Assembly (NCBI RefSeq): GCF_001194135.2
Contig: NC_068986.1
Coordinates: 83,015,518 to 83,078,682 of the forward strand
DNA from: Octopus bimaculoides
Lineage: Eukaryota
Direction: 5' to 3'
Length of the DNA stretch: 63,165 nt
Shown: positions 6,802 to 48,594 of the stretch, piece by piece
Layout: each line of letters begins with the position of its first letter
Position numbering within the stretch: the first letter of the stretch is position 1
The notes under the pieces: model-generated
What the model was told of the DNA's origin: nothing
Seen by the model: only the letters and a program-made list of their open reading frames with translations
Database searches by the model: none
Translations under genes and position numbers: made by a program

Positions 6802-7343
6802 TATATAACTATTTACCAAGAGGATCCTTTTCAAGATGAAGTACATACATAATAAATTTAAATCAGAATATACATAAGATACATGAAAGAATGTATATAA
6901 AATTCAGAATACATATAAAACACATATGCCATTAGGCAATGTTGAAATATGCTGAAATAAATGCACTAAATATGTTTTGTGCATTCATTGTAACACAATA
7001 ACTGTACAGTGAAATCATTTCCCATTTATGAGAATACATTTCTCAGCTATTTAGCCACACAGTCAAATCAACAGTATCATTCCTCCTTTCTGGAAATATG
7101 TTAGTTTGTAATGTGTGAATATACTGAAATAATGCTTTTATTTAAAATATCACTGGTAAGTTATTTCACCCAATTTAGATATATAAAATAAAATATTGGG
7201 AAGTTGTTCTTTCAGTGTTAAAACTTCTTTTTTCTGTGAATACATTTAAAAATTATATTTTTCTGATAGAATGAATTTTGATAGTGGTGTGTTAACTCTT
7301 CTATATGAAGAAATAAATGTATAGCTAAATTAACGAGTTTTTA

Positions 7344-7696
<353 letters not shown>

Positions 7697-8290
7697 CTAT
7701 CCTGTATGAATATGTTTGTGAGTAGTTAAGATTATCACTTCAGAAAGAGATTTATTATGGATATCACTTTGATATAATTTATCTAGTGTATGAATACGTT
7801 TTGGGGTAGTTACATGAAGATTCATTTTCTTTTGTGCATGAATTTGTCTGTGGCGAGTTAAGATAGAACTTTGAGAGAAAGACTTACCACAGATATCACA
7901 GTGATATGGCTTCTCTCCAGTATGAATATGCCTGTGAGTAATTAAATTTATTCTAGCAGAGAATGATTTACTACATATGTCACAGTGATGTGGTTTCTCT
8001 CCTGTATGAATACGTATGTGAGTAATTAAGCTAGATCTTTGAGAGAAGGATTTACCACAGATATCACAATGATATGGCTTCTCTCCTGTATGAACATGTT
8101 CATGGGTAGTTAGGTTACCTTTCAGGGAGAATGACTTTTTACAGATATTACAGTGGTATAAGGCCTTCCCTGTTACTTTCAGCGTCTCAGTAGGAAAATC
8201 AATACTTTTATACTGTGGTTTACAATTAATTCCATTTTCATATAGTGTATTTTCCATTCTTTTCCTTCTTTCACTACAATATATATTCAT
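7697..8290 (-). CDS. C2H2 zinc-finger protein (ZNF1), 197 aa: 4 intact fingers followed by degenerate fingers; alternative start at 8257
   Basis: The ORF has four C-x2-C-x12-H-x3-H motifs with TGEKP linkers. Its N-terminus MNIYCSERRKRMEN parallels ZNF3 [14 protein letters not shown]. Confidence 0.9.
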   Translation of the reverse strand: MNIYCSERRKRMENTLYENGINCKPQYKSIDFPTETLKVTGKALYHCNICKKSFSLKGNLTTHEHVHTGEKPYHCDICGKSFSQRSSLITHIRIHTGEKPHHCDICSKSFSARINLITHRHIHTGEKPYHCDICGKSFSQSSILTRHRQIHAQKKMNLHVTTPKRIHTLDKLYQSDIHNKSLSEVIILTTHKHIHTG

Positions 8291-8619
8291 TTGTATTCTT
8301 TTTATATTTTATTCCAAACAAATATTTCTACAATTATATTACCATCAACTGTGATTTTTGTAGGTATCAGGAAATGTTGCAACTTCTTTGTAAATATATC
8401 CAATTTTAAATAGAAGACAAAATCATTTTGTTCAGATTTCAAAGAGAACTGTGAAAAAAACAATTGTTACCAATAACATCTCTCAGAGGCTATAAGTAAA
8501 TATTTCACAGTAATTCATTACAGTTTTATATAAACAGGGTTACGTCTGTCCTGCAAAACATCTTTTAGTCTATAATATGATGTATATGAAGAAAAAACTT
8601 CTTTCCTTTCAACATCAGC

Positions 8620-8650
8620 TGATATTCTGAAATAATAGAGAAACCATATA
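8620..8650 (-). promoter_or_regulatory. Candidate splice acceptor opening the ZNF1 coding exon (exon starts at 8626)
   Basis: TTTCTCTATTATTTCAG|AATATC; the same motif precedes ZNF3, followed by a leader of similar length (336 versus 339 nt). Confidence 0.65.
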
Positions 8651-8781
8651 AGATACAGAAGACACATACAAAGAATGGATTTAACAGTGAAAATATCACA
8701 TTTATACTTTCTAATTGTAGGCATAGACTTTGAACTCTGCTTCTACCATTTTCCTTCCTATCTATATATACATATACAGTA

Positions 8782-9823: not shown

Positions 9824-9839
9824 TATATACATATATATT

Positions 9840-10570: not shown

Positions 10571-11191
10571 ACAAAACAAAGTTTGTCAGGGGAAGTTACT
10601 CTATTTCTCTTTTTTATATTTTTCTAAATACATTACGAATGATTTAAAACATTTTGCTCTGAAATATGTGTGAGTTTTTCATTGATGTCCACTGGTTCAT
10701 CTGCCATCATTAAATCATGATTCATTTTGGTATTTCGAGAAAAAGGAGAGAAAGAGATTACATCCATGAGCAATACAAAAAAAAAAAATCTTCAACTTTT
10801 TTGCCAAAAGGAAACAACTCCGACACACCGGAGGGGTACTTTTCATCTCTATACCGAAAACCCCAAAATCGTGTTGCATGGAAGTCTTACGCCGGTGAAC
10901 CAGAGAAACGATTGTGTTATAAGCAATCCGACAACGAAAAACATCAACCAGATGTTCGCTTTCGAATCCGCCAGAATGTATTAAGAATGAATAGACAGAA
11001 CATAATTTGTAGCACAAAATTTGCTACCATTGCAATTAAGATGTATTTAGGAGCAACTCGTTCAAGGTCCTCAACTAAGGCCAAAATTCTTCGCTCTAAA
11101 TAACCCGTTAAAAAATTAATAAAACACCAATTTTAGGGATTTTTTCGTTTTCTTCTAATGACAACTCTTAATCAGAAAATTTTCAAAAATT

Positions 11192-12371
11192 GGGGCTAAG
11201 AATTGCATCTCCTTGAAAAATGCATTAAAATAAAAAATTCCGATTCCTACATTTTAAATGTCGGAGATTGCGAATATGCAACAAAAAAATATTTTTTAAA
11301 AATTTCACTCTCCTCTGCCCACAATTTAAAGTTTTTGATTTTGTTTACTTTAAAGGGATTGTAGCGAATTGACGAACATATGCAAATCGACATTAAATAT
11401 AGACAAAATCATTAAAGTGAAAAGAATTTGCCTTAAATAATCGTAAATGATAATTAAATGTAAATTAAATATGCACCACTTTATGAGAAACAAACATTAA
11501 TATGTTTAATAAGGGGCTCAAATTTTCCACCTCCCCCAATTTTAAGTTTTGAACTTTTTTATCCATTTATTTATTTGTCTGTCCATTTATCCCTATCCGT
11601 TTATTCATAAAATATATTTGCCAACTAAATGTAGCGGTCCTCTACAGGACCGTTACATTGTTTTTAGCCCCAGGAATATATATTTATCTATCTTTCTCTT
11701 TATACACATATCTATACGCTTATTGAATTTAAAATTTTGAAATGTGGTTTCCTGCATATTCGGAATCTCCGTCATCGAAAACAGAGAATAAAGGATCTAT
11801 TCTATCTCAATCACAGATTTTTAAATTAATTTTTTTAACTTAACAGTTTGAAACTTCAAATACTGGTAGAATTTCTCACATAGAATACGGCTTACTCTGA
11901 ACATTTTTGACCAAATTTCGTGTTTTAGAAGTTATTTCGTGTTAAAGTTGTTGTATTTGGGTAATTTCAGCCAATCAACGACGTGTATTTGGTTGAAGAA
12001 AGCTACTGCTGTTTGCAATAGTAATTGAAGAGGAACAACTACTGGGTCATCTCTACTAAATGTCACTATTCTGTTCTATTCGTATGTTGTGTGAAGATGA
12101 TATCACTTTTATCTCTCTTCCTTTCTAGTCATCACCGTGCATTCCTTACTCTTTCCATCCCTTGTACACTATCAACTTGCAGCCAGCGAGCGAACTTGTC
12201 ACTGCCACTACAATTACCGTATTTTCCGGTGCATAAGCTGTTATTTGTTTTGTTTTACCTTCATGTTTTGATATTATTATTTTTTTCATCTAATAAACGT
12301 GGGAATACGAAAAAAGTTTTTCAAAAAAATGCATATTTTTTCGGGAGAGGTGCGATTCTGCATTAGCTACC
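11192..12371. mobile_element. Second MITE family (GGGGCTAA TIR), copy with nested repeat fragments
   Basis: 11192-11790 is homologous to 39923-40500, and a degenerate right TIR gagaggtgcgattctgcattagc lies at about 12345-12371. Confidence 0.65.
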
Positions 12372-13094
12372 AAAATTAGTTTTGCATGATGATGATGATG
12401 ATGACGAATATTGCAGTATTTATAATAAAGAAGTCAGAAGCATTTAAAGTTACGTAATTTTAGCCAATGGATTTTAAACCACTGCCCTCAGCGTGAGTTG
12501 AAACTTTCTGGTCATGGCAACTCCACTTCCTTAATTCTATGGCTATGTAAACTTGAAATGTAGTAGGAGACAATGCCGAGAGCCTGCGTCTGTTGGAAGA
12601 GGCAAGTGGTTGTGCAGATGACTTTCTTTCGCCTTCTGTTTGTGAGGACACTGGATTCATGTCATTGAAATATATAAATTTAAATGCTTTTATCTTGTTA
12701 ATTAGTAATTTTTCGAAAAAACAAAACAAGACAAAAAAATGAATGTGATATTCATCATCAGCAGGCATGATTACATCTATGTAGGAAATTTGAAAACAAC
12801 CCATTGAGAACTGAAAAGTGGTTGGAAGAAAATCTAAAAGGATTAATTTTGCTTATTAAAACATCGTTGGTGAAATGCTTTTGGTTTCATTTTGTGATAG
12901 CCATCACACAGAAAATACTAGCTTCCAAATTCTGTTTTTTTAATTAGGAAAAAAGGATCAAAATTTAAACCTCTAACATTTTTCAAAAAATTTTCCTTAA
13001 TAAACAAATCACAAAATTGGAGTCAGTGTGAAAAATGGCCCCAATTTACCAAATTAAAAATTTTTTTGCTTAATTTCAAAATCTGTGACAACAA

Positions 13095-14195
13095 CAGAAA
13101 AGATCCCTCTTCTCATAGTGAAGGGTAGATTATCTGATTCTTATATGCTAAATCTGGTGCTGCAGAGTAGTGAGACTTGGGCCTTAAATGCAGAGGATTT
13201 GCAAATGCTAGAAAGAAATGTGAGCATGTTTCAATGAAGGTATAATGTCAGCATATCTGAATGATATAGTACAAATGACTTAAGAAACAAGGAATCAGAT
13301 ATAGTTTGCAAGAGACAACACTGTTGGTATGGGCATATGATGTGTAAAGAGGATGATAGCTGCAGAAAATCACTGAGCATGCAAATTGGATAGTGCCTAT
13401 GTAAATGTAAGACCATGAGAAATGGAACAGAGTAGCAGAAACTAATATTAAGATGCTGAGTTTCACGAAAGGGACCACAATTGGTAATATGCTGTACTGG
13501 AGAAAACCAGGCAATCATAGCAGAGAGAATACAAATAAGAAGGGTGTTGGTGGCTGGGATACTCTTGCTGTATTCACTCACTGCCTTCCTTTCTCTTACT
13601 ATCCTCTTCCCACAGCCTGTTTTACCTGGGTTGCTTTCACTGTATATGTCATCTGCTATTCACACTCAACTTCTACCTCTCTCTCACTCCTCTTATTACA
13701 TTCACTCACAGCTCCACCTCTTTGTCCCTATTTCTCTCACCATAGCTTCTCTGCCACCACAACATTCATTTCTCACTCTTTAGCCCACCATCATAAGCTT
13801 ATGCCTCTTTCTTTCAGTGTTCGTCTTCTCACAACCTCCTCAGATTCTCATCTTTCTTCCTCTCATGCCCCATTCTTCTCACATATTCACCCTTAAATGT
13901 GGGATAGCACTAGACCCCTCCACAACCCAGTTTATCATCCTTTTCTTTCTCACTAATCCCTGACACTACTCTTTCTCTTTTCCTTTTCCCTTCCCAACAG
14001 TGTCCACTTTTAATTTCTTCACTATCAACCTCTCGCAACAATAAATCTGTTTCTCTCACCATACTCAGCCTTCCTTTGTCACCTCTTTTAAAGTCATCCC
14101 TTTCTCCTGTTACCTTTTTTAGCCAAGGGACTTTTTTAGTTTTGCTACTTACAGAGTGACCACACTAATCTTGGTGTTATAAGAAAAGCATCTTA
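13095..14195 (+). mobile_element. RTE LINE 3' fragment with pyrimidine-rich 3' UTR
   Basis: SETWALNAEDLQMLERN-like remnant at about 13170-13230, followed by a pyrimidine tract like the RTE copies at 1-1090 and 43560. Confidence 0.65.
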
Positions 14196-14199
14196 TACA

Positions 14200-14560
14200 C
14201 TTTATATAGTGAATGATAAATTCCATTGTCTATGAAGCACAGGTTTCAGTGGATTATGGCAACAGTTGGACAGAAATTGCAGTAGTGGAAGGAAAATTTA
14301 AATCCAGCTATAACAATCATCTTTTGAGTTTTAGGCACCATGATAAAAAATGTTCAATGACACTTTTGGCTTTAATCTGGAGGTTTAAAGACGAAGGAAC
14401 CAACTACAACATCAACTGGAAGACCATCTCCAAAGCCAGACCCTATATTAACAGGTCAAAAAGATATTCAGTATTATATCTTGAGAACCTCACATGATTA
14501 CATAAATTCCAGGAATGAGATTTTTTCTGTATATCCACATTTTAAGGAATACATTTTGAC
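14200..14560 (+). mobile_element. Penelope-like element, GIY-YIG endonuclease 3' remnant
   Basis: EGKFKSSYNNHLLSFRH...LIWRFKD...INWKTISKARPY matches the Penelope GIY-YIG C-terminus (FK.RYNNH..SF, WKLK, A.PY). Confidence 0.75.
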
Positions 14561-15357
14561 AGAATTTAAAAAGAGGCCACTAGACACATAGTTTAACCAT
14601 TAACATCTTGTTTATGTCTTTTGACATTGCTTATTGTAACACTGATTATTTCCCTCCTGTTTTTCTTTTTGTCTTCTTCCTTACCAGCATTCCTTGTTTA
14701 AACATTATCTGTTTAGAAAAGCAACTGACAAACGGTTTTGTTTTTAGCTTGACAAATAGCAAAATAAATTTATGTTTCAACCAGGAAATCCTGTGTAGCT
14801 GTATTTAACAAAAATTGTGGCTTTTATTATAACATTACATATATACACAGATAGATATATAATCCAAATAAGAAGACAAAGAAAGAGTTTATCACATCTT
14901 TAATGATCAGTTATAGTTGTTTCGGTACCACTCTGTTTTTAACACCATTGCATGCAAAAGTTCCAAGTGAAAAGTTATGAAATATTTGGGGCTTTAAATA
15001 ATGGAGTGGCATTTCATAAGACTTGAATCAAAAAGTGTGCTCTTACATTGTGCGTCTGTCAAGCACTGTATTTTAATTATATCTGGAGGAAACAAGAAGT
15101 TTAAAATAAAAACAAAAATAAAAATGGTGAAATAGCAGACAGGCCTTAGACAATAGTAATACCAAAACAGATAAAGATAAGTTAGAAGAAAAAGAAGACA
15201 TAAATGGTGAGGTAGGCTAATAAAAAAAAAAAATTGTCAGCAACCAAAATAATAATGATCAAGTGAGTATAACAATAAAGAAAGCATATCTCAAAAAAGA
15301 GAATGAGAAAGTGATAATGCTGTAGAAATATAAACATCTAATATTAATAATAATAAT

Positions 15358-15571
15358 CCTTTCTATTGTAGGCACAAGGCCTGAAATTTTGGAGAAGAGA
15401 TTTTAAGTTGATTACATTGACTCCAGTGCATAACTGGTACTTATTTTATCGACCCCGAAAGGATGAAAGGCAAAGTTGACCTCAGCAGAATTTGAACTCA
15501 GAATATAGTAACAGACAAAATACCGCTAAGTATTTCACCTAGTGTGCTAATGATTCTGCCAGCTCCCTACC
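15358..15571 (-). mobile_element. tRNA-derived SINE (family with the gtcgactttgcctttcatcctttcggggtcgataaa core; MetaSINE-like)
   Basis: Reverse-complement match to the copy at 49874-50086. The superfamily name is from memory and tentative. Confidence 0.8.
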
Positions 15572-15608
<37 letters not shown>

Positions 15609-17304
15609 CAACAACAGTAAGAATAGGTAGGACATGAACAACATTAATGATAATGAAGACAAACTGAAGACAGAGGTTGTATTAATAATAGTGATGATGA
15701 TAGTGATGGGCCAAGAATGATGCAGATAAGAAATGGATAGCCACTGACTAAAAAAAACCTATGATGGTGTTGGTGGATGAAATAGGTAAAGAAAGCAGAC
15801 ACATGCAATAAAACACAAAATTGGGTGAAATGGGAGAGGTAGTACTGAGGGAAACCAATTGCTGGTAACTTTTCATTCTGAGATGCTAAGACATAAAGGA
15901 TTTAGAGTTGATAGGGGCAGGTGAGCTTATGAAAAACAGAAAAGTAAATAACTAAATAAATGGGAGAAAATGAAGTAGGTATTTTAAAAAAATATATATA
16001 TATCTATTTAAAATGCTAATGTTAAAAGCTGAAAGAACACAGAATTGAGAATGAAAATAAAATAAAATTAGAATAGATTTAAGACAAAATAGTATAGAGA
16101 CAAAGAGAGAAACAAATAAAACTAAACAATGAATATTAATGTGACAGGAATAAATGCTTAATAGCAAGCTAGTTATTTACAGGGGTGGATATTAAAAGTC
16201 ACTGCATTGAAAAGGTGGAGAAATGGTAGATAGCCTTGAGGCCTAGTTGAGTGTTGCATTGGAAATAACCTGTCAATCTAGCCTTCCAGCACTTTAATGA
16301 ATGAATGTATATATGCATTCATGTACACACACAAATACACATATATAAATATATGTATACATACACATATATTATATACATATATCATGAGTTGGTGTGC
16401 AAAACAATGATGGGAATAAACAAATTGAAGACCAGTTGAAATATGTTTGAGAAATATTTAAACTTATAAAGGGTTTACACTGAAGTTTGTTGTAGAGAAA
16501 AAATTCTCACTTGAGACAAAAAAGGTGTTAGAGCATGGTGGTCAACTTAGAATACCCTCTATTGGACTGATAGGTGCATTTTCAAATTGTTAGTTCACTT
16601 TCAAAAATTCATTCATGCACAACAGAAGCAGTATTAGTTTAAAATAACAATATGTATACTGTTAAATGCAGATACATCACAGAAAGCCAAACTAACTGCA
16701 GTATTCATCCTCAGATAAAATTTCTTCTAGACATACAGTGTTAGATAACACAAAAATATTTAAGTAGCAAAGTGACAGAAATGCATATTTAGCAATACCA
16801 CCACCACCACTGTTGGACAATTTTCATCCACTATTAATATAATTTTGTGTTATATAATACTGCGCATCTGTAGGAGATATTATCTCAGGATGAATACTGC
16901 AGTTAATTTGGCTTCCCATGATGTATCTGCATTTAGTATGATATACAGATTGCTACTTTAAACACATTCTGCTTCTGTTGCACATGACAAACTTTTATTC
17001 AGCTCTCCAGCTACTTGCAATATCAGTGATTTTTTAACCACTATTTTTCTATGTCAGTGACAATGGATTTTGCTTTAGCATGTGGCTGCCAGTGGGTATT
17101 TGCTACTAATAAAGCCCCAAAAGGCAGAAATGTGCATCTAGCAATACCATCACTGATGCTGGATGATTTTCGTCTGCTACTGATATATTTGTGTTTTTTA
17201 ACACTATGTCTATAAGAAATATTATCTCAGGATGAATACAGCAGTTGATTTGGCTTTCTGTGAGGTATCTGCATTTAGTATGATACACAGTCTGATGTAT
17301 GTAA

Positions 17305-17341
<37 letters not shown>

Positions 17342-17419
17342 AAAGTACATACAAACAAAAGTATATACATACATATGCAAAAGTATATGCATACATGCAC
17401 AAAAGTATATACATACACA

Positions 17420-17950
17420 CAGAGTCCTCACTTAAGGTCATTGTGCTATAACATTGATGGGAAATCTATAAAACCAAAGTAAAAATTCACAACACATATG
17501 CCTATCAAACTGAATTTGTTTGCTTTACTTCTTCTTTCCATTTTTTCTTCCTTTGCAACCAGTTGTTTTCAATTCAGTAATATACATAAATAAGTCAATA
17601 AACAGATAATGATGGATAACAATGCATGATATTAATTTTTTTTTATTTCACGGCTTTCTTTTAAGACACAATCTTTCTACATTTATTATGTATTTAACAG
17701 AGATACAACTCTTTTAAGGCATGACAATACTTAAAATATAAAAGGGTGGAGTTCCTTGAATCTCATGGCCAAAAAATATCTAATGAGGACCTCATAGAAA
17801 GTAGAACAGTACTGTGAGTGAAAATGCAAGACCACCAGGTATTTTAACTACTAAAAGATTTGTCAGAGAGTATCCTTATTTTAGATAAAGCTATGGCAAT
17901 TTTCACCAAAAAAGATCTTCAAAGAGAAAAAGTTAAGAACAAACAGGTTA
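17420..17950 (+). mobile_element. Tigger/pogo-like remnant
   Basis: cagagtcctcacttaag TIR-like start and an EFLESHGQKISNEDLIE-like remnant at about 17748-17800. Confidence 0.4.
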
Positions 17951-18364
17951 ATAATGAGCGACTTCAACTTCTAAAAAAAATTATACAATCCACGGTGGTG
18001 CATCAGCATGGCCGCAGCTCTGAGCTGAAACTTTGAAATGAAATGAAATGAAATCATAAGAAAAATAATGCAAGATAACAGACTTTGTCCAAGTTCTTTA
18101 AAGAAACAACCGTCTTATTGATTTGTATTAATATTTAAGTGTTTGTTTACAATTTTGTTGATCTTTTTGTGACTAGGAATGTAACTCTCTTTATATCAAT
18201 GAACATTGGTTAAATTGGTTTTGCTTTATGTTATTTCACTTAAATTTGCTCTTCTCAAGCACCTATCAATGACATTAAATGAGGACTGTGTGTGTGTGTG
18301 TGTGTATATAATTTCTTCTACCATAGTAGGCATAAGGCTCGCTGCTTTTATAACAATAATAATC

Positions 18365-18575
18365 ATTTCTACTATAAGGACAAGGCCTGAAATTTGGTGG
18401 GAGGGGCTAGTTGATAACATTGACTCCAGTGCTTGACTGGTACTTATTTTATCGATCCCGAAAGGATGAAAGGCAAAGTTGACCTCAGTAGAATTTGAAC
18501 TTAGAACGTAAAGACGGATGAAATGCTGTTAAGCAGTTTGCCTGGCATGCTAACAATTCTGCCACCTTGCTGCCT
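18365..18575 (-). mobile_element. tRNA-derived SINE, same family as 15358
   Basis: Core ggtacttattttatcgatcccgaaaggatgaaaggcaaagttgacctc. Confidence 0.8.
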
Positions 18576-19709
18576 TAATAATAATAATTCTGGGCCTTGT
18601 GCCTAGAGTAGAAAAGATTGTATAATAATAATAATAATTCTGTTTTGCCATAGCAGGATCAACAAGTTGTTTAAACTCAATATGCATGTAGGTGTCCCAA
18701 TGCCACCAATACCCTTGTTAACATTGCCATGCCCAGCCATCCATGTCTGAATTACTTATTTTCTTAGTTTCTGGTGCCTGACAACCAACTTATCACAGGA
18801 AAGGTATCCAGCATTAGAAAATCTGCCTCATCCAAAGTCATGCAAGCATGGAAAAATAGACATTCAAATAATGATGATACACGCACACACACACACACAC
18901 AATTTCTACATACAATGGGTTTCTGTACAGTTTCTGTCTACTACATTCTGTTCACATATTTATAAGGCATTGGTAAACCTGAGGAAGCTATAGCAGAAGA
19001 GAATTGCCCAAGATGTTCTGCATGCAGTGGAAATGCACCCAAACTCAGAAAGTTTTGCAAAGCAAACTTATGAACCACATAGTCATGCTTGAACCTATGT
19101 ATATTAAATACTTATTATTAAACCCCTGAAAATGTGTTGTATAGGCACAAGGGAGTCTGTGTGATGAAGAGGTTTGTTTCCCAACCACATGGTTTTGGGT
19201 TCACTCCCACTGTGTTACACTTTGGGTGTGTGCCTTCTACTAAAGCCCAGGACCAATCAAAGCATTGTAACTGGATTTAGGAGATGGAAGGAAACAACTG
19301 AAAAGAAGCGTAGTATACACACACACACACAAGATCAATGAATATGAATAGAAATATTGTGCAAATTATGTTATGTACATTTCCATAGAATGGTTATTTA
19401 TTTGCATATTAATGTATTACTTTGTGAAACCACATAACCAGACATTTTCATCACATATCTTTGTATAAATGACAGGTGTGTGTGATATTTATTCACTTAT
19501 TATATTTTACCCTGCAGTAAATGTGCAGCATATTGTTATTAAATACAATGGATTTACAGTGTGCTTAAGAATCATAAATTAACTAGTTAAGTTTTCAGTT
19601 TGTTTTATTGACTGGCTGATAGACAGAGAGTATCATTGGTATTCTTCCAAAGTAACCTGTGAGCAGGAGTGCTAAGTTAATTGCCTGGATCTTATAGATC
19701 CCAACTACT

Positions 19710-19758
<49 letters not shown>

Positions 19759-20017
19759 GTGTGTATGTGTGTGTGTATTTTTGTCTTCTTGACAGTGCAC
19801 AATTGTTGTAAATGAATGTCATTTGTTTCCAATGTTCTGCAAAATCAGGTATGGCCATGGGGAAATATTACCTTGCTTAGAAACAAGTAAGGGTTGGTAA
19901 CAGGAAGGGCATCTGGCCATAGAAAATCCACCTTAATAACCTCAATCCAAGCCATGCAACCATGGAAATGTGGACATTAAAATGATGATGAAGAAATGAT
20001 AATGATTATTTAGTAAT

Positions 20018-22636
20018 TTAGTATATAAACTTAGACCCAAAGATGTCTAAGTGGCCAAAAGCATTTGTCCCTCCACTGTTCCCACTGCCATCATAGTCAA
20101 AGTCATCTTTTTTCTTTTTTGTGCTGTCTTCATCTTTGACCTGTGATAATTTTTCCTTGAAATACCTTTCATTGTCTTTTGAAATTTCATTTTGAAATCT
20201 TTCTGGAATTACAGATTTTTCAAGCAGTTCTTCTAGATTACAGCATAACTCACCTGAATCTAATAGCTCTTTTGTTACACGTCTATATATAAAAAAGTAA
20301 GGAGTGTCACTTTTTGATGATTTAAGTGTATCTGAAAAATTATACTTTGTTTCTGTTACAGATTCATCATTAAAAATATACCAGTTGTCTTTTAGTAAAT
20401 TACTCAAGTTTGTATAATGTTCATTAATTAAACACGAATGTCGGGATAGCAATATACAATGTCCGGAATCACTGTTATAACCAGAATGAATAACAACAGA
20501 ACACAGTACATAATTAATATCTTCCTCGACAACCAAACTCTCATCATTTGTAGTGAAACATTTTAAACATAATTCTTTTGGATAATTGACATAAGCCATA
20601 ATTTTAGACCGCTTTTTATTCTTTTTATTATAAGAAAATCTTGATAAAGTTAGATTTAAATATTCTGGAGCGTCTATGAGGAAAACTTGTCGAATTCCAT
20701 CACGATAATCATTACAGTTTGGACACTTAAATTGATTACTAACCTTCAATTCTTCCACTGTGAAGTAATTCTGTATTAAGTCTCGAATATCGAGTTTATC
20801 ATTTATATTTTTCTCTTCCTTCACCTCCTCCTCCTCATCATCATCATATGGTAATGCTAGGAGCAAAAACGAAAATCTTTCTTCGTATTTTGTTTCAGTT
20901 TGACATTTTAGACACCTTGTAGAGTTTCTGAGCTTACCAAAAAATTTTCTATCAATTAGCGTTCTTGATTTACTATCTACTATTTCGCATTTAGTTATCT
21001 CTCCCTTATTTTTATCACTCAAATCTGACTCTGTTTTCATGCTGTTTTTCTTTTCTTCCTCATCAAAAGCATTCAGAAGATGTGACAAAAACTCTGCACA
21101 GTCTTGCTGCTCATATTTTGCAAACCATGAAGGATTAGCGTTGCAATAGAATTCTGATGGGTAAAAAGAAGGCCGTTGGCTTGATAGTAGATAGGAGAAA
21201 ACTTCTTGTAGTTTGCTGATGATTCCACCAGGGGGCACTGGCATGCCTAATACCTCTTGTCTAAAATTATCCAACATAAAGAGCACCTGAATAGCTGAAT
21301 TCATATAACACGAGTTTTTCACATTGCACAATCCAGTTTTGCGTGTTAGAGTCTTCTTAATTTCAAGAGGAGGAACAGTAAAATTTTTGCAATTACTAGT
21401 ATTACATAATGCTGCAAGAGGTTTTACTTTATTTAATTGCAGTTCTTTGATTGAGAAACAAGTCTGTCTATATTTTATAAATGGTTCTTTAGAATGCCAA
21501 TATATTTCCAACTCCATATTGGCCAATAAGATTTCAATGCATGCTAAACCTGTGCTGCTTTTTTCCTCTGCTAATATTGGAATGATGTCAACCAACGACA
21601 TTATCATGTGAGAGGTACTATCAGGACTCATCTGTATCTTTGTATATATATGTACCAAGATCTTAGCTGCAGATTCTCTAGAAGCAATCGGTTTCAGCAT
21701 GTTGACTATGAAAACAATAGTCTCCTGAGCAATTTCTTTTAAAACTTCATCAAATCCTGCTGCTGCTAATTTTTCAAATATCCCAATTATCCATATATGT
21801 ACTCGTTGAGAAAATGGCCAATCCAGCCAATGTAAAATTTGATAAATTGTGTTGGAGATTCTAGGTTTATTAATTACATCAATATTAATTAAATCAATAA
21901 TTTCTTCTACTGATTTAACTGGTATTTGACTCAACGTTCCAAGACAGACAGAAGGACTGTTAAATGGCTGCGAAATTAAGGAAAACAGATAATGAACTGA
22001 ATTTTTCTTTGTGTCATCATTAGAATTATTAGGGTTACAATTTTCCCATAATTGAAATAAAATTTGTCCAGCTGTATTTATTGTTTTAACTTCTCGTAAA
22101 AAATTAACTCCTTGTTTTGGTGTTCTAGTAACATATAAAATATCAATAATCACACAACAGAAATCATATCGTTGATAAACAGGAACACATTTAGGCTGTT
22201 TTATCAATAAAGAAAAGATTATAGCTAAACACTGTAAATTACTGTTCTGTTTTAAAAATATTGTGATTAACTGCTGGAAATATTTCACTAATGATGCATA
22301 GCATTCAGTACCTTTTAAAATTTGTAATGATTTTTCGATGATAACAATGGCTGCTGTTGGATTTTGGTGTGAATTAATTAAGATATCATTCATTAAAACT
22401 TTGTTGAAGTATTTTTGAAATATCTCTTCATTGTTTCTTGCCCAATTTTCGTAAAGTCGAACACCAGATGTACATTGGAATGCAGTTTCTCCATCTAATG
22501 ACCATTTTACTGCAAGATTTAAAACTGGGACTGTGTCTTGTGCTGTTTTTGGTGATTTTAATATTTTTTGTAGAATTTTTTCTTTAAGGATATCTGGGTG
22601 ATTAGAAACAAACAGTCCTTGAAGAATTTGATCCAT
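20018..22636 (-). CDS. Ubiquitin carboxyl-terminal hydrolase of the USP35/USP38 family, 872 aa, CDS without introns
   Basis: Cys box GLCNVKNSCYMNS, QQDCAEFL, zinc-finger subdomain CLKC...CPNC, His box VVIHSGYNSDSGH and WYIFNDESV. It has a long helical N-terminal region and a Gly-rich C-terminal tail like USP35/38. USP35 versus USP38 cannot be resolved by eye. Confidence 0.92.
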   Translation of the reverse strand: MDQILQGLFVSNHPDILKEKILQKILKSPKTAQDTVPVLNLAVKWSLDGETAFQCTSGVRLYENWARNNEEIFQKYFNKVLMNDILINSHQNPTAAIVIIEKSLQILKGTECYASLVKYFQQLITIFLKQNSNLQCLAIIFSLLIKQPKCVPVYQRYDFCCVIIDILYVTRTPKQGVNFLREVKTINTAGQILFQLWENCNPNNSNDDTKKNSVHYLFSLISQPFNSPSVCLGTLSQIPVKSVEEIIDLINIDVINKPRISNTIYQILHWLDWPFSQRVHIWIIGIFEKLAAAGFDEVLKEIAQETIVFIVNMLKPIASRESAAKILVHIYTKIQMSPDSTSHMIMSLVDIIPILAEEKSSTGLACIEILLANMELEIYWHSKEPFIKYRQTCFSIKELQLNKVKPLAALCNTSNCKNFTVPPLEIKKTLTRKTGLCNVKNSCYMNSAIQVLFMLDNFRQEVLGMPVPPGGIISKLQEVFSYLLSSQRPSFYPSEFYCNANPSWFAKYEQQDCAEFLSHLLNAFDEEEKKNSMKTESDLSDKNKGEITKCEIVDSKSRTLIDRKFFGKLRNSTRCLKCQTETKYEERFSFLLLALPYDDDEEEEVKEEKNINDKLDIRDLIQNYFTVEELKVSNQFKCPNCNDYRDGIRQVFLIDAPEYLNLTLSRFSYNKKNKKRSKIMAYVNYPKELCLKCFTTNDESLVVEEDINYVLCSVVIHSGYNSDSGHCILLSRHSCLINEHYTNLSNLLKDNWYIFNDESVTETKYNFSDTLKSSKSDTPYFFIYRRVTKELLDSGELCCNLEELLEKSVIPERFQNEISKDNERYFKEKLSQVKDEDSTKKKKDDFDYDGSGNSGGTNAFGHLDIFGSKFIY

Positions 22637-22752
22637 GTTTTCGGTCAGAAAAATTTTATTCAGTAAACTTGGTAAATATCATCCATGAGATATTTTTATG
22701 TAACTGGAAAGCTGTTTCTCCATCTAATAATCATTTTACTCCAAGATATTGT

Positions 22753-22825
22753 TTTCAATATTATCTTATATTCTGAAATAGAGAAAAAGTATACAATGTA
22801 GAGGATATTTAAAAGTAGAAATGCA
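22753..22825 (-). promoter_or_regulatory. Candidate splice acceptor of the USP coding exon (exon starts at 22772), ZNF-type
   Basis: TTTTTCTCTATTTCAG|AATATA, lying 136 nt upstream of the USP ATG. Confidence 0.65.
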
Positions 22826-22934
22826 ACAATGGAAATTTTACTATATATCTATATTAATAACTTTTAGACACAGAAATTTATCTAAGTGACTGAAATTTAT
22901 TTTGTAATTTGTTATTAATATTATAACATAACAA

Positions 22935-23350
22935 TGGTGGCAAACTGGCCAAATCATAAGCATGCCAGTTAAAATGCATAGTGGCATTTTATCCGTCTTT
23001 GTGTTCTGAGTTCAAATTCTGCCAAGCTTGCCTTTCATCCTTTCAGGGTCAATAAAATGAGTACCAGTTGGGTACAGAAATCAATGTAATTGACTACCCA
23101 CAACCCCAAATTTCAGGCCTTTTGCCTATAGTAGAAAGGAATATTATAACCTAGGCAGCTAGCTGGCAGAATTGTTACTGCGCTGGGTAAAATGCTAAGT
23201 GGCATTTCATCCATTTTTACATTCTGAGTTCAAATTCTGCTGAGGTCAACTTTGCCTTTCGAAGTCAATAAAATAAGTAGTAGTTGAGCACTCGGCTCAA
23301 TGTAATCAACTTACCCACTTACCCAAAATTGCTGACCTTGTGCCAAAATT
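22935..23350 (+). mobile_element. Two tandem SINE copies, same family as 49874
   Basis: Repeated gttctgagttcaaattctgc...gcctttc cores at about 23003 and 23221. Confidence 0.75.
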
Positions 23351-23429
23351 TAGATATCAATATTATATCATAACACTTAACGTGGATCAAATCGAGGGAC
23401 TGGTTATCCACATCAACAGTAGCTTAGTA

Positions 23430-25214: not shown

Positions 25215-26147
25215 ATAAAGAGAACAGCTATGTTTGCAGCTTCAAATACGCATTGGAAGCTGCCCCTGCACCAAAATATACTGTTGTCATCGATGCTGAC
25301 AAGAAGCCACCTGGCTCCCATGCAGGCCGTTTTAACGCACTCACATGCAATGAAATTGCTGTGCTTCTTCATAGAGAACACCACAACAAATGGGACATTA
25401 TCCTTCAGTGTAGGGACAAGATCCTGGAAAGGATCAGTGAGACCCACGGGTCCTTCGACGCAATGCAATACTTTCTTCTTTTTCTAGATGGTACTAATGG
25501 ATATCACTTCGGAATTCTTTTGTGCAACAGCAACAAAACTGTCTCCTGCAAGCAATTCTATGTTTACCATTGTATAGTCCACGATGCCTGCTTCAATCAC
25601 CTCCACCATACAAGAAACCTTTTCCAACAATTTACTGTGGACATGTGCATGAAAATGGAGTCCGAAAGATTCTGCTACATTAAGCAAAACCAAAAGCACT
25701 TGTGTTTGGAGAACTACATTCACCTTTGAGATGGTATTAACACTGATGTCGCTCCCAAAAACCTTGGAAAAGTGTGCATATTTCTGTCAACATTTACAGG
25801 AAACCCTCACTACATGTACAAATGCACAGAGGACGCCATGACATACGTGTGCCACTGTGGCAGACCCAACCTCTTCATCACTTTCACCTGCAACTTCAAG
25901 TAGACAGAAATCAGCAGTGAATTATTCCCAGGGCAAAAGGCCAAAGACAGACACGACCTTCTGGCCAGAATCTTCAACAGAAGTTGACAAAACTAATGGA
26001 ACTCTTTCAAAAAGATAAGGTGTTTGGAGATGTTAGGTGCCACATGTACTCCGTTGAGTGGCAAAAGGGAGGCCTGTCACACGCTCATACTCATTTGGCT
26101 CTCAACGAAAATCAGCGCCACTGACATTGACAGTATTATATCTGCAG
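25215..26147 (+). mobile_element. Helitron Rep (HUH endonuclease) fragment, disabled
   Basis: HAGRFNA..CNEIAV, RNLFQQFTVDM..KMESERF.YIKQNQK.L, GRPNLFITFTCN, VEWQKGGLSHAH (the VEWQKRGLPHAH motif) and DIDSIISA. Confidence 0.92.
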
Positions 26148-27850
26148 ACCATGCAGAACATCTGGTGGCAGAGGAAAGCAGAGGAGATGCAAAACTATGT
26201 GGACCAATGAGACTTGTGCCATTTTTATGCCACAATCAAGATCTTTGGCCTCACAAGGTCGTCAGTGGGTGGCCTGAAGAACACAGCTGGCTCTGCGATA
26301 ACTGACACCCAGGGGAGTCTCGATTGCCGGAAGTCCCATTTCGGGAGCTTACTTAACAACCTCTCACACACTCTTGGCAATCTCTTCCAAATCACCCCAC
26401 AGCTCCCCATTTGCCATTGGATGTCCCTGTTGCCCTCAGCCCATGAGTTCAACAAGGCATTCAAGTGCATGAATCCGGGCAGAGCTCCAAGACCAGACAA
26501 CATCCCATTTGAGTTTTTCACACATGGAGGACCTGAGCTGAGAAATCATCTGATGCTCCTTATCCTCAAGATCTGGAAAAGCAAGACCCTCCCAAACAAC
26601 TTCCACAAGGCAGACCAAGAGGATTGCAACAACTATGGGTGTATCTCACTCCTGAGTACTGCAAGCAAGATCTTTGCTTGTATCCTACTCAACCGCCTCC
26701 TTATCCTTGCAGAAGATGTCCTCCCTGAGTCCCAGTGTGGTTTTCGACCTTCTCGAGGCACAATCGACATGATCTTCTGTGCCTGCCAACTTCAGAAGTG
26801 TCAAAAACAACAACAGCCTGCAATGTTCATCTTCTGGGATCTAAAGAAAGCCTTTGACAAGGTCCCCCATCCTGCAATGTGGGCCATCCTTGCTCGGTTT
26901 GGATGTCTGCAAGACTTCATTGCCCTGGTCCGCTCCCTTCACGACGGCAAGGTGGGTAGGGTATGCCATCAAAATACCCTCACAGACCCATTTCCCATCA
27001 CTGGGTGTCTTAAGCAAGGATGTGTCTTGGCACCAATCTGTTTCTCTTTGTACAATGCCACCATGTTCAACGAAATCCCACTGGACTCACCTTCCATCAG
27101 CATGTGTTATAGCTTGGATGACGGACTCTTCAATCTCGCATGTCTCCACGCAAAGATGAGTACCTCCACCATCTCAGTCTATGAGATGCAGTATGCCGAC
27201 AACAATGCCACCCCAAGCAAGACCATAAATGACCGATCTTTATAACAAGGTTTATGAACACTTTGGCGTGCAGGTAAACATATTAAAAAATAAGACCCTG
27301 ATCCAACCTGCACCAGGCTAGAACAGTCCACCCACAAACATTAGCATCAAGAGCTAACAACGAGGTTCTTCACCACACCTCTCTACCAAGCATTGAAGCC
27401 ACCATTCTTCACCATCACTTCCGCTGGGCAGGTCATGTCCAGCATATGGAGCCCTTTCGACTCCCAAGGACCATGCTCTATGGAGAACTTGCAATTGGAA
27501 CAAGACCCAGAGGAGGCCCAAAATTCTGTTTTAAAGACCAGCTCAAACAGACCTTGGCTCAAACTAACATCCAGCCATCCTCATGGGAACAGACTGCCAT
27601 GGATAGGACAGCCTGAAGGACTATCATCCACAAGTGAGCCAGCTCCTTCGAGCAGAACAGACGACCGAATGAAGTAAAATGCAGGAAAGGAAAGGAGCGT
27701 CTTCAACATCCTCGACCTGCACCGACCATCCTGTGCAAATTCTGCCTACGACTCTTTCACCACCAATTTGGACTCCAAAGTCACATTTGGCACAAACATC
27801 TGCCAAGGAGACTGGATAGAAACTGACGAACCCAATGCTTGGATAGAAGC
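26148..27850 (+). mobile_element. RTE (BovB-like) LINE reverse transcriptase fragment
   Basis: APRPDNIP, NYGCISLL, LPESQCGFRPSRGTIDM, DLKKAFD, KQGCVLAP and YAD motifs, with frameshifts downstream. Confidence 0.93.
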
Positions 27851-29559: not shown

Positions 29560-29830
29560 TGTGTACCAATAATTTGGTAACAATAATTACAGCGTTAAAT
29601 ATAACTTCCTGTGCAAAGGGATATAACCGTTGACTTCTTGTAGGCGGTGACCAATTAGACTTTGGCGAATACTTAATATCATATCTACGCCAAAAGCAGT
29701 ATTATTTTATGGAAAAGCAAAACTTACCGAAAGTGAAACTATTAGATGGGGGTGCGAAACTATTAATACTAATATGTGAATAAGAGGTGGGTGTGGGATA
29801 TATAGTAATGTGCTAATATCGAGGAATATT
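29560..29830 (-). promoter_or_regulatory. Candidate promoter/first exon of the USP gene (donor TCG|GTAAGT, exon ends at 29728)
   Basis: CpG-enriched unique sequence and a consensus donor upstream of the USP acceptor. Inference only. Confidence 0.35.
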
Positions 29831-30486: not shown

Positions 30487-30924
30487 NNNNNNNNNNNNNN
30501 NNNNNNNNNNNNNNNNNNNNNNNNNNNNNNNNNNNNNNNNNNNNNNNNNNNNNNNNNNNNNNNNNNNNNNNNNNNNNNNNNNNNNNNNNNNNNNNNNNNN
30601 NNNNNNNNNNNNNNNNNNNNNNNNNNNNNNNNNNNNNNNNNNNNNNNNNNNNNNNNNNNNNNNNNNNNNNNNNNNNNNNNNNNNNNNNNNNNNNNNNNNN
30701 NNNNNNNNNNNNNNNNNNNNNNNNNNNNNNNNNNNNNNNNNNNNNNNNNNNNNNNNNNNNNNNNNNNNNNNNNNNNNNNNNNNNNNNNNNNNNNNNNNNN
30801 NNNNNNNNNNNNNNNNNNNNNNNNNNNNNNNNNNNNNNNNNNNNNNNNNNNNNNNNNNNNNNNNNNNNNNNNNNNNNNNNNNNNNNNNNNNNNNNNNNNN
30901 NNNNNNNNNNNNNNNNNNNNNNNN
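30487..30924. other. Assembly gap (other gaps: 4643-4687, 38897-38906, 56110-56209)
   Basis: Runs of N. Confidence 1.
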
Positions 30925-31949: not shown

Positions 31950-33480
31950 AAGCCCATCAAAGGTGATGACAGCATTGATCCACAACATTCATCCTCCTCT
32001 GCCTCCAGCACATTGTTTCTCATGGGAGTGGAGATGACTGACAAGACCAATACAAGATAGGCAGATCCCATGGCACTGAGGGCACTGCAAGTGACACTGA
32101 ACAACAGTCAGAGGGGGTTGATGATGTCTCCTCCTCTCTTCTGTGTTTGATTTCAAAGCACTCAACTCCAGTCAGGGACTCCACTCCATTGGAAGGGACA
32201 CCACATAAAATGCTTGAGAGGATCATGAACACAAAGTTTTGGATGTCCAGTCTCAGTCTCACTGAAAAGGAACATCTTAGGGAGCCAGTTACCTAAATTT
32301 TTGATTTACATGGCCCACTCAGCAGAGAAGACAGTGAAGGATGCAAGCCTCAATGCTGTAGATACTAGCCCTCAGGAGGATTTTTGTATGAGACACCTTA
32401 TCCTTCCGCATGAGACTGAGGATACTTTAGAGCGATCTGAAATGGAACATTTCCAGTTGTCTAATCTGGTACTGATAAAGGGTGCATCATTCACACCCTT
32501 ACAGGAGGGTGATACACAGACAGCTCAATAAATGGAGATCTTTGTACTTGCTCTGAAAGACTCATTTGCTGAGTCTCCTGAATGATGCAGAGGCCAAGTT
32601 GATCCAATGAAGTATCTTATTATTAAGGAGTTCACCTACAATAGAGAAACATTATCAATAAGAATACGACTGAGAAGGATATGAGTATGGATAGGCTGAT
32701 TCACTTGAAGACCAAGTTGAGAATAGGCACTGTTCATTGAGTTTGTCATGGGTTGAAGAGAGGAAGAGGTATAAGATAGTGTAGCTGAATTGTCAGCATA
32801 CTGAATCTTGTACACTGTGGTTGAGAGAATTTTTGATGTGGCTTTCAGGTAGCAAATGTTAAAGATGCCACCATAGAAGTACCAGATACAAATTCCATCT
32901 TTGGTGAACAGTTTCATAGAAATAACAGTTACAGCCACCAGGTAAATGTTAAACCATATATGGGTAAGGATGCATCTTTCTATTACTGTCACCTGAACAT
33001 CAGTGGGTTCCAAGGCTTCACCACCAAGTGTCACTCTCACTTGCATACCATCATGAAACTTCTGGACAATCAAGAGAATCAGTGGTGGACAGCCAAACAT
33101 CTGAAGCAGGCACCGTAACATAGGATGGATGACTGTGTCAAATGCCTTTGTTATATCAATGAAGGCATAACATACGTCTCTCTGCTGTTCATGACACTTT
33201 TGAAGAGGACAAGCCACAAATATCATGTCAGAAGTGCTTCTTTCTGTTCGAAGTTCACACAGGGACTCAGGCATAAACAGGTTGACAAAATGAAATAGAA
33301 GATGTCAGAGGAGAATATGTGAGAGGATAAGAGAGATTCTTCTGCAGCTGCTGCACTCTGCATGCTGTTCCTTGTACTTGTAGATTGTGACAATATTGGA
33401 GTGCTTCCACCTGTCAGGTATAGTCTTCCCCTGCCAACAGAGAAGAAACAAAGAGTGAAGATGGGATAGGAGATGAGGCC
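31950..33480 (-). mobile_element. RTE LINE, RT to 3' end, degenerate
   Basis: PESLCELRTERSTSDM, DITKAFD and QYADN, plus a 3' CPQCHGICLSCIGLVSH motif. Confidence 0.85.
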
Positions 33481-45470: not shown

Positions 45471-46544
45471 ATAACAGGCATAGGAAGCGAACCCATATAT
45501 GCACATATGATAACTTCACAGGCGGCTGCAACAACATTTACCACAATGGCAGCAGCATAGGCGAACACAAACAGTGAGTTACAAGAATGGTACATAAAGT
45601 CGGCTTCAAAGGTAGCCATAGCGGTAAGTGGGTAGGGGAGGGTCATAGTGCTACTAAGAACAATGACACATGCATCCACACACAGACGCATGCGCATATA
45701 AGGATACACATCATAGAACAAAACGGAATAGGCAGAGCAGGAGCACACACGAGGACTGAAAGTGTCGCTGAGGAGGTCACAGATGTGTGATGAAAGATTT
45801 CTGGACAGTGGACATGAGTTAGAATAAGAACAGTAATAAACAAGTGAATGAATATATAGTGCAGGTATTTGGCAGAAAAAAAAAAAAAGAATGACCATCT
45901 CAAAATACAACAATATTTATATCTATAGTTTGTCATCATCACCAGTTTAACGTTCACTTTCAAGTGCTGGCACGAATTGGACGGAATTTGTTGTGGATGA
46001 CTTTCTATAGCTGGATATTCTTTCTGTGGCCAATCCTCACCTGTTTCCAGGTAGGGTAATATTTCCTCATGATCAGACATGTTTTCACTGAAGATAGGAA
46101 ATGAAGGACACCTCTTGTATGACAGTGACACAACTATCACATGATGTTAAACTAGGGCGACACTAAGATATATATATATCATTTAATGTCCCTCTTCCAT
46201 GCTAGCATAGGTTGGACAATTTGACAGGAGCTGGTGACCCTGATAACTACACTAAACTCAATTGTCTGCTTTGGCATAGTTTCTATGGCTGGATGCCCTT
46301 CCCTAAAGCCAACCACTTTACAGAGTGTACTGGGTGCTTTTTAACTTATATAGATACATATACAATAAGTTTCTTTCTGTTTCCATCTATGAAATCCACT
46401 CAAGGCTTTAGTTGGACTAAGGCTATAGAAGACATGCCCAAGGTGCCACAGAGTAGGCCTGAACCTAGAATCATGAGGTTGGGAAGCAAACTTCTTACCA
46501 CACAGTTGTGCTTTCACCTGGATTTATTAATATAGAAACATAAT

Positions 46545-46625
46545 AAAATTTAAATTTTTTACATTTTAAGCATCCTCCATTTATACTATCTTTCTCTTAT
46601 TTCAGAATATCGGAAGACATTGGTA
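46545..46625 (+). promoter_or_regulatory. Candidate splice acceptor opening the ZNF3 coding exon (exon starts at 46606)
   Basis: Polypyrimidine tract TTTCTCTTATTTCAG|AATATC, homologous to the ZNF1 and USP acceptors. Confidence 0.65.
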
Positions 46626-46944
46626 TAAAAAAAATTTGTACATTGGATGCATCATCAATATTTATCATATTTTAAAGACTAAACGAAGAAATACAGAAAA
46701 GATGCAACCCTGTTCATATAGATCCATGGTAGAATCACTGTGAAATATATCCCATGGACTGAGATTAAAATGAAATATTTTTACATTTTGAAGAGTGGAG
46801 TATGTACAAAATGATTTTGCATTCTAATTAAACTTGCATTACAAATAAATTTGCAGTGACCTCAGATATTGACAAGGATTAGAATTCCTGGAAATGTGTT
46901 GGAAGAAATACTTGTAAGGAATATGATATAAAAGCAAAATATAA

Positions 46945-48594
46945 ATGTGTATATATTGCATTAAGAAAAGAAAAATTATGGAAAATATATCATATGAGAA
47001 CAAGGTTAAATGCAAAACAGATTCTAAAAAAATCAATTCTGATGAGCTGCTGAAAGAGAGAGCAAAAACATCATTCCTCTGCAATAGCTGTGGTAAATCA
47101 TTCTCTCAAAAATGTAATCTTAATATTCACAAACGTATTCATACGGGAGAAAAACCATTTCACTGTGATTTCTGTGGTAAATCATTCTCTCAAATAAATC
47201 ACTTAACTAAACATAAACGTATTCATACGGGGGAAAAGCCATATAGTTGTAATTTCTGTGCTAAGTCATTTTATGGAAGTGGTGAACTAACTAAACATGA
47301 ACGTATTCATACAGGAGAGAGGCCATATCACTGTGATATCTGTGGCAGATCATTCTCTGTAAATGATCACTTAACTAAACACAAACGTATTCATACAGGG
47401 GAGAAGCCCTTTCACTGTGATATCTGTGGTAAAGCATTCTCTTGCAATGGCGATATACCCATACACAAACGCTCTCATACAGGAGAGAAGCCATATGATT
47501 GTGATATGTGTGGTAAATCATTTACTACAAAAGGTCACTTGACAACTCATAAACGCTCTCATACAGGTGAGAAACCATATCACTGTGATGTCTGTGGTAA
47601 ATCATTCATTCAAAACTGTCAGTTGATTAGACACACACGCATTCATACAGGAGAGAAGCCTTATCACTGTGATACCTGTGGTAAATCATTCTCTGAAAAT
47701 GCCCATTTAATTAATCACAAACGTATTCATACAGGAGAGAAGCCATATCACTGTCATATCTGCAATAAGTCATTTTCACGAAATGATCATTTCACTCAAC
47801 ACAAACGTATTCATACAGGAGAAAAACCATATCACTGTGATATCTGCGGTAAATCATTCTCTGTAAGTTTTCGGTTAAAAATTCACACACGTATTCATAC
47901 AGGAGAGCAGCCATATCACTGTGATATCTGTGGTAAATCCTTCTCTGAAAAAGGTGACTTAACTAAACACAAACGCATTCACACAGGAGAAACCCCATTT
48001 CAGTGTGACATCTGTGGTAAGGCATTTTCTAGAAATGCTAATTTAACCACTCACAAGCGTGTTCATACTGGTGAGAAACCATATCACTGTGATATCTGTG
48101 GTAAATCATTCTCTCATGGAAATGTCTTAATTGCACACAAATACATTCACACAGGAGAGAAACCATATCATTGTGATGTCTGTGGTAAATCATTTTCTCA
48201 AGCAAGTCACTTAAGTAAGCACAAACATGTTCATACAGGTGAGAAGCCATATCATTGTGACATCTGTGGTAAATCATTCTCTGTTGGAAGTGCAGTAACT
48301 GGACACAAACGTACTCACACAGGAGAAAAACCATATTGTTGTGATATCTGTGGAAAGTCATTCTCTCAAACAAGTCATTTAACTGCTCACAGGCGTGTTC
48401 ATACTGGAGAGAAACCATATCACTGTGATGTCTGTGGTAAATCATTCTCTGTAAATGATTCCTTAACAACTCACAAACGTATTCATACAGGAGAGAAGCC
48501 TTATCACTGTGATATCTGTAGTAAATCATTCTCTCAAATAAACCACTTGACTAGACACAGATTTATCCATACAAGAGATGAAGCATCGCTGTAA
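46945..48594 (+). CDS. C2H2 zinc-finger protein (ZNF3), 549 aa, 18 tandem fingers of CDIC type; alternative start at 46978
   Basis: Eighteen C2H2 motifs with HTGEKPY linkers in one uninterrupted ORF. Confidence 0.95.

Follow-up and report, generated by a model that had tools for sequence, protein, structure and literature searches.

A deubiquitinase gene flanked by zinc-finger genes

The stretch of Octopus bimaculoides DNA analysed here (the window, 63,165 nt) carries a gene for a USP38-like deubiquitinase, hereafter USP, in the company of C2H2 zinc-finger (ZNF) genes, two of which, ZNF1 and ZNF3, flank it. The USP protein of the window maps to O. bimaculoides assembly GCA_001194135.2, sequence CM046606.1, at approximately 83.03 Mb. 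The features on which the analysis rests are as follows, with strands given relative to the window and exon positions (+) and intron positions (-) counted from the putative acceptors.

7245..8290, minus strand: finger region of ZNF1; the ORF ends after 197 aa, with more finger coding out of frame at 7245-7577
8258..8737, minus strand: ZNF1 5' module, with intron end 8627-8737, putative acceptor (first exon base 8626) and leader 8258-8626
20018..22636, minus strand: USP38-like deubiquitinase ORF, 872 aa, uninterrupted, stop codon included (ORF scan and Pfam)
22637..22747, minus strand: USP-specific 5' leader, +26 to +136; not ZNF-like, ~70% identity to the Argonauta leader
22748..22772, minus strand: ZNF-type exon start of USP, first ~25 bases, AATATAAGATAATATTGAAAACAAT; similarity to the profile HMM stops at 22750 or 22748 (see also alignment A3)
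22773..22860, minus strand: ZNF-type intron end before USP, with pyrimidine tract, CAG and the conserved element TTTTAAATATCCTCTACATTGTATAC, which fits the family consensus TTTTAAGTAGCCTCTATATCTTACACTG
35197-36342, plus strand: ZNF2, a C2H2 gene
46524..46977, plus strand: ZNF3 5' module, with intron end 46524-46605, putative acceptor (first exon base 46606) and leader to the MEN start codon
46945..48594, plus strand: ZNF3 ORF, a multi-finger C2H2 protein of 549 aa from the first ATG

ZNF1, with its interrupted finger region, is probably a decaying ZNF copy whose 5' module is intact.

The octopod gene is a predicted USP35/USP38-type deubiquitinase. Pfam places a UCH domain (PF00443) at residues 434-784 of its translation (132.2 bits against a cut-off of 23.9) and a Usp38-like_N domain (PF21246) at residues 45-370 (126.3 bits against a cut-off of 27), and both GLCNVKNSCYMNSAIQ and VVIHSGYNSDSGHC, which we take to be the catalytic Cys-box and His-box of USP enzymes, are present. 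While this domain architecture is that of other USP35/USP38 deubiquitinases, the octopod protein is strongly diverged (~30% identity to other molluscs) and shorter (872 aa, as against 930-1050 aa), and its coding region lacks introns. Orthologues in Octopus sinensis (XP_029637918.1) and Argonauta hians (GAB1609849.1) are 98% and 74% identical to the protein of the window. Synonymous divergence (dS) of the coding region is 0.057 between O. bimaculoides and O. sinensis and at least 0.76 between Octopus and Argonauta, and dN/dS is 0.12-0.18; purifying selection keeps the ORF.

Among the matches found, the closest non-octopod relative of the octopus protein is an 848-aa USP38-like sequence (P0006, 38% identity) on the ~3-kb contigs L003 and L004 (Logan SRR27666070 and SRR27666064), which may come from a decapodiform cephalopod. 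The ZNF-type exon start was not found within the 527 nt upstream of its ATG, and the sequence was left out of the dating of the fusion. A 52-aa member of a USP cluster (P0156) was rejected as a relative, its context being unrelated and prokaryote-like.

A ZNF 5' module at the start of USP

In USP, the exon behind the putative acceptor begins at 22772 (minus strand). A first-pass annotation of this DNA had quoted intron-end and exon strings for USP, ZNF1 and ZNF3, all of which are found in the window as written, and had counted 16 of the first 20 exon bases of USP as equal to those of ZNF1, which we also find. The 11-mer TTTCAGAATAT occurs in the window only at the acceptor sites of USP, ZNF1 and ZNF3; the expectation from shuffling is 0.17 occurrences, and none of 100 shuffles gave three. 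When positions 22600-22920 of USP were compared by blastn with both strands of the rest of the window, the acceptors of ZNF3 and ZNF1 ranked first and second, in gene orientation and with the AG in register (E 1e-6 and 8e-6), followed by a match at E 0.002. The pairwise alignments run from -88 to +17 with ZNF3 and from -111 to +20 with ZNF1, so that the similarity to ZNF3 does reach well upstream of the pyrimidine tract, as had been claimed.

Comparison with other acceptors, a check proposed at the outset, gives the same picture. As a null we drew on ~108 kb of octopod DNA, where 216 other sites with a pyrimidine tract and YAG served as candidate acceptors. Aligned to USP over -111..+25, ZNF3 scores 38.5 and ZNF1 31.5, which is 6-8 sd above these controls (mean 10.5, sd 3.3, best unrelated site 17). 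The intron-only part (-111..-21) gives 25 for USP against ZNF3, with a null maximum of 15. Converging acceptor sequences, as AT-rich DNA might produce them, do not explain scores so far above those of the controls. For the intron similarity to -88, local gene conversion with ZNF3 was considered and set aside as unneeded, because ZNF modules on other chromosomes score similarly against USP (20 and 19, compared with 25 for ZNF3); a conserved intron element of the family, including a branch-point-like CTTAC or CTAAC, would be sufficient to account for it.

The homologous intron ends are closely preceded by SINE copies, two in tandem at USP (22909-23366, minus strand) and one stretch at ZNF3 (46381-46505, plus strand). 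They mark the upstream edge of detectable module homology at these two genes.

Six further copies of the module were located in ZNF-cluster DNA of other chromosomes, two in O. sinensis (L015, CM016888.1) and four in O. bimaculoides (L016, CM046629.1). Each of the six stands ~150 to 450 nt upstream of a finger ORF, and most run into a shared leader of ~350 nt that extends to a ATGGAAAAT start. The first part of the module is intronic, and in it the conserved element TTTTAAGTAGCCTCTATATCTTACACTG precedes a pyrimidine tract and CAG; the second part is the exon start, A(A/T)TATC(A/T)GATGACATTGGCAT, so that CAG is followed across the junction by AATATCAGATGACATTGGCAT. In our alignment of the acceptor regions (A3), the USP sequences conform to this ZNF pattern. 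Locus L011 (P0200) lacks the module, its similarity being confined to the N-terminus and ~50 nt before the ATG. No matches came from searching proteins with the aligned N-terminal peptides of the ZNF genes.

A profile HMM was built from eight ZNF modules only, with USP excluded, and run over 379 kb of cephalopod DNA. After the training sequences, its next-best matches are the USP acceptors of each species: 30.5 bits (E 4e-8) for a further Octopus species (L012), 22.9 bits (E 9.5e-6) for O. sinensis, 22.1 bits (E 1.7e-5) for the window at 22830-22750, and 14.5 bits (E 0.004) for Argonauta hians, which reaches E 7e-4 with a profile of -30..+30. The best unrelated match has 12 bits (E 0.02) and the best on reversed decoy sequence 5.4 bits. 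Over the -20..+25 core, USP-to-ZNF scores of 11-21 fall mostly inside the range found between ZNF paralogues (14-30). The 5' intron end and exon start of USP are thus homologous to the 5' module of ZNF genes, and the module is family-wide and present on several chromosomes, which bears out the homology behind the ZNF origin first suggested for this part of the gene.

The homology has a sharp downstream limit. Although the profile runs to +45, the USP alignments to it end at +22 to +25 in all species, in agreement with the junction 20-25 nt inside the exon that had been proposed. Beyond +25, USP has neither the ~350-nt ZNF leader nor a MEN... finger ORF, and carries only the first part of the module. 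An extended homology was sought between the USP leader (+22..+136) and the leaders of ZNF1 and ZNF3 and was rejected, the similarity not being significant (shuffle p 0.02-0.2). The USP leader from +26 to +136 presumably derives from the 5'UTR of the parental mRNA. Set against the 5' architecture of tandemly expanded C2H2 ZNF families, then, the acceptor module of USP lines up with the intron end and the first part of the leader, both conserved there, but where those genes continue into the ZNF leader and finger ORF, a deubiquitinase gene follows instead.

Splicing, age and origin of the coding region

The acceptor at 22772 is putative. A pyrimidine-rich tract ending in CAG is kept in all 12 sequences of alignment A3 while the exact sequence of the tract varies, which is the signature of an acceptor. 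In addition, the RefSeq model P0204 splices exactly into a paralogous module acceptor, at position 20883 of L016, and its C-terminus EYQMTLASKNWLHRCTSSFKD is read from the leader exon of that ZNF gene. The donor of P0204 lies in a finger-linker codon (HT, then G^GTGATA) at L016 14047, so that the model joins one ZNF array to the module of the next ZNF gene and terminates in the leader exon of the latter (O. bimaculoides CM046629.1). From this structure, tandem ZNF genes appear to make read-through chimeric or truncated transcripts.

On the donor side, a candidate end of exon 1 at 29728 (G/GTAAGT) had been put forward, and this part of the earlier proposal does not hold up. The site falls within a 37-nt stretch of the window (29692-29728, minus strand) that is missing from O. 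sinensis (L001, ~5672), an indel that removes the GTAAGT donor, so the candidate is not conserved even at a dS of only 0.057. Comparisons of the upstream regions of USP, ZNF1, ZNF3 and other ZNF loci, which were swamped by SINEs and other repeats, revealed no shared first exon or promoter. A ~500-nt element examined as a possible shared first exon proved to be an unclassified repeat with three copies of 79-85% identity (44951-45453, plus strand; 40037-40523, minus strand; 11309-11784, minus strand), two of them upstream of ZNF1 and ZNF3 in gene orientation. Look-ups with the USP protein of the window and its cluster members gave genomic records and three Logan contigs (L012-L014), with no RNA-derived contig among them. 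The three contigs follow the genomic order through the presumed USP 'intron' and end in repeats or microsatellites, so that they carry no information on splicing. The presumed intron also holds fragments of reverse transcriptase (RVT_1) and of Helitron_like_N, besides a run of Ns at an assembly gap (25253-27245, plus strand; 32636-33274, minus strand; 30487-30924).

Comparison with Argonauta dates the structure. The Argonauta acceptor, TCTATTTCAG, is followed by the exon start ATTATCAAATAGTATTGGCAAC, the same structure as in Octopus, and at several positions (TATC, TTGGCA) the Argonauta sequence is nearer to the ZNF consensus than that of Octopus. DNA homology between the two genera starts ~20-30 nt upstream of the CAG and continues through the leader and ORF, the pattern expected at a functional exon boundary. 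With acceptor and exon start shared by both genera, the fusion is older than their split.

The genomic neighbourhood is less uniform. A check of synteny for a neighbouring ZNF gene in other cephalopods had been suggested, and Argonauta answers it in two ways: the acceptor and exon start are there, but no ZNF gene lies within 10 kb of the Argonauta USP on either side. Hence the host of the fusion was not necessarily ZNF1 or ZNF3, which may have arrived at this locus later. A cwf18 gene lies 5 kb downstream of the Argonauta USP; none was found in the 63-kb Octopus window. Repeats of one family follow the USP stop codon in both genera, within ~15 nt in Octopus (19830-20003, minus strand) and at ~100 nt in Argonauta (L002, 12727-12850), with other copies in the window at 45933-46110 and 51175-51285; the post-stop repeat may be an old insertion in the 3'UTR shared by both.

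With respect to the coding region, the first-pass annotation had called USP intronless, and the comparison with other molluscs sustains this: in O. bimaculoides, O. sinensis and Argonauta the genomic range of the coding region equals the length of the ORF, whereas the scallop orthologue has 7 coding exons over 11.5 kb. The absence of coding introns in octopods fits a retro-copy; complete intron loss without retroposition would be the alternative. A second cephalopod USP35/38 was found neither in a word-indexed protein search nor among the 20 best-scoring representative clusters named, so the gene looks like the only orthologue of the lineage, and the same protein searches gave no multi-exon parent elsewhere. 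The earlier proposal that a USP35/38 copy had landed at this locus is accordingly borne out as to its lack of introns, but what had been called a copy looks like the sole orthologue of octopods, no extra one appearing among the proteins searched. A sole intron-free orthologue fits either the replacement of a multi-exon gene by its retrogene or the loss of introns in place.

The classical scars of retroposition were sought around the gene. The 2 kb that follow the USP stop codon hold no A-rich tract; the search for a target-site duplication returned just an AT-rich 12-mer, probably a chance match, which lies 1.65 kb beyond the stop; and no remnant of a host ZNF gene was found 3' of USP, neither by tblastn with three ZNF proteins over 8300-20018 (nothing below E 4) nor as a ZNF leader. 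The lack of finger remnants and of poly(A) 3' of USP, already given as a caveat to the original proposal, is thus confirmed by searches for both. At the age of this gene (dS at least 0.76) no such scars are expected to survive, and their absence neither supports nor refutes a retro-origin.

A probable chimeric gene, its alternatives and its significance

In our reading, the octopod USP38-like gene is probably an old chimeric gene, a retro-copied USP35/38 fused to the 5' end of a ZNF gene. A processed USP35/38 transcript would have given rise to a single coding exon consisting of its own ~110-nt 5'UTR and an intron-free ORF of 872 aa, and this exon would have been fused 22-25 nt downstream of an acceptor from the 5' module family of octopus C2H2 ZNF genes. 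The acceptor, the pyrimidine tract and the branch-point region would accordingly be of ZNF origin, and transcription would be expected to begin in a non-coding exon further upstream, which splicing would join to the coding exon at 22772. Under this history the fusion would have taken place before Octopus and Argonauta diverged, and purifying selection would have acted since then on what is apparently the only USP35/38, a case of retrogene replacement. What the sequences show is that the module is homologous, where the homology breaks off, that the coding region lacks introns, how old the structure is and that the ORF is constrained. That retroposition was the mechanism, that the module passed from ZNF to USP, that the acceptor is really used, and that a ZNF promoter and exon 1 came with it, we infer; the replaced finger ORF of the earlier proposal is a further conjecture. 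As a chimeric or replacement retrogene, USP has good support from sequence homology and moderate support as to mechanism.

It is conceivable, though unlikely, that the module moved to USP and no ZNF gene was ever disrupted at this locus, whether by template switching of reverse transcriptase from USP mRNA onto unspliced ZNF pre-mRNA or through a DNA-level junction produced by exon shuffling or duplication. Such a transfer would agree with the lack of ZNF remnants downstream of USP, with the absence of ZNF genes within 10 kb of the Argonauta orthologue, and with a detectable intron homology of just ~60-110 nt. The last of these says little, however, because ZNF paralogues on different chromosomes likewise lose intron homology within ~60-110 nt, and neutral remnants would in any case be erased at a dS of at least 0.76.

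The direction of transfer has also to be considered. The module might originally have been USP's own, captured by a founder ZNF gene as an intron end plus ~25 nt and then spread by expansion of the ZNF subfamily. The USP structure is indeed old and common to Argonauta, while the ZNF modules were sampled from Octopus alone, and ZNF1 and ZNF3 sit on either side of USP. But the module is present in at least eight ZNF genes on three chromosomes or scaffolds of two species, where it is mostly continuous with the shared ~350-nt leader that USP lacks, and transfer from USP would leave the intron-free coding region to be explained by a second, independent event. We consider this reverse direction rather improbable. 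Parsimony favours transfer from ZNF to USP: in many ZNF genes, spread over several chromosomes, the module runs on into the gene's own leader, and a single event then accounts for the foreign 5' end of USP as well as for its intron-free ORF.

Very unlikely, in our judgement, is a reading in which the shared element is a core promoter and transcription start (a TATA-like box near -35 with an initiator-like TCAGAAT), that is, a promoter type common to USP and the ZNF genes. It draws on TAAATAT and TATAATAA, which stand at -37..-30 in Octopus and Argonauta, and on the fact that conservation between these genera sets in just ~25-30 nt before the CAG. Neither ZNF1 nor L016b conserves the TATA-like box, though, and both the pyrimidine-rich tract plus CAG, retained with varying sequence throughout the 12 aligned sequences, and the exact use of L016 20883 by a RefSeq model speak for a splice acceptor. 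Chance or convergent similarity can hardly be the answer: the DNA is ~34% GC and splice acceptors have a common consensus, but the scores lie 6-8 sd above the 216 controls, the profile gives E values of 1e-5 to 4e-8 in Octopus with a best decoy of 5.4 bits, and the match spans non-consensus intron and exon positions in four species.

The chimeric reading of USP has precedents, and further chimeric retrogenes include jingwei in Drosophila and TRIM5-CypA in the owl monkey. Retrocopies that integrate in host genes can give chimeric transcripts with upstream host exons, and retrogenes can also gain new 5' exons (PMC4772013); an example is the mouse Taf9 retrocopy in Ak6 (Carelli et al. 2016, PMC4772013). 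Like chimeric retrogenes of this kind, the octopod USP has an intron-free, presumably mRNA-derived ORF behind a putative acceptor and intron of another gene, and its expression, like theirs, would depend on a borrowed 5' exon and promoter. It differs in that the borrowed part is apparently only non-coding, with no fusion protein, that the junction lies inside the terminal exon of the host rather than in an intron, and that its host would be one of a ZNF family that has expanded massively.

A second parallel is the 'orphan' retrogene SYCP1 of amphioxus, which replaced its multi-exon parent and co-opted local regulation (PMC5803294). There, as apparently in octopods, the intron-free copy is the only family member left while relatives are multi-exon, and a regulatory input co-opted from the insertion site would be a likeness too; for the octopod gene, the loss of the parent is deduced from protein searches rather than from inspection of whole genomes. 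Host-gene capture and retrogene replacement are already well documented in mammals, flies and amphioxus, and what is new is the octopod lineage. Our literature search found no paper linking USP38 with octopus.

The first-pass annotation went on to suggest that ZNF clusters act as expression cassettes for new non-ZNF genes. This statement about clusters at large is a generalisation from a single case. In its broadest form, the ZNF 5' module would be a portable splice-in cassette: read-through of ZNF arrays would splice cryptic donors in finger linkers, as in P0204, into the next module, whatever ORFs lie behind a module would be expressed, and USP38 would be merely the first to be detected among several non-ZNF genes that ZNF clusters of cephalopods have captured by this route. 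We offer this as a speculation with little chance of being right in full.

For the biology of cephalopods, the gene offers a concrete and datable case, older than the Octopus-Argonauta split, of how an intron-free copy may gain a spliced 5' structure from a gene of the expanded cephalopod ZNF family. The gene appears, moreover, to have become the only USP35/38 deubiquitinase of its lineage. The ZNF 5' module itself, with TTTTAAGTAGCCTCTATATCTTACACTG, a pyrimidine tract and CAG followed by AATATCAGATGACATTGGCAT, provides a genome-wide probe for whether ZNF clusters have given 5' ends to other genes.
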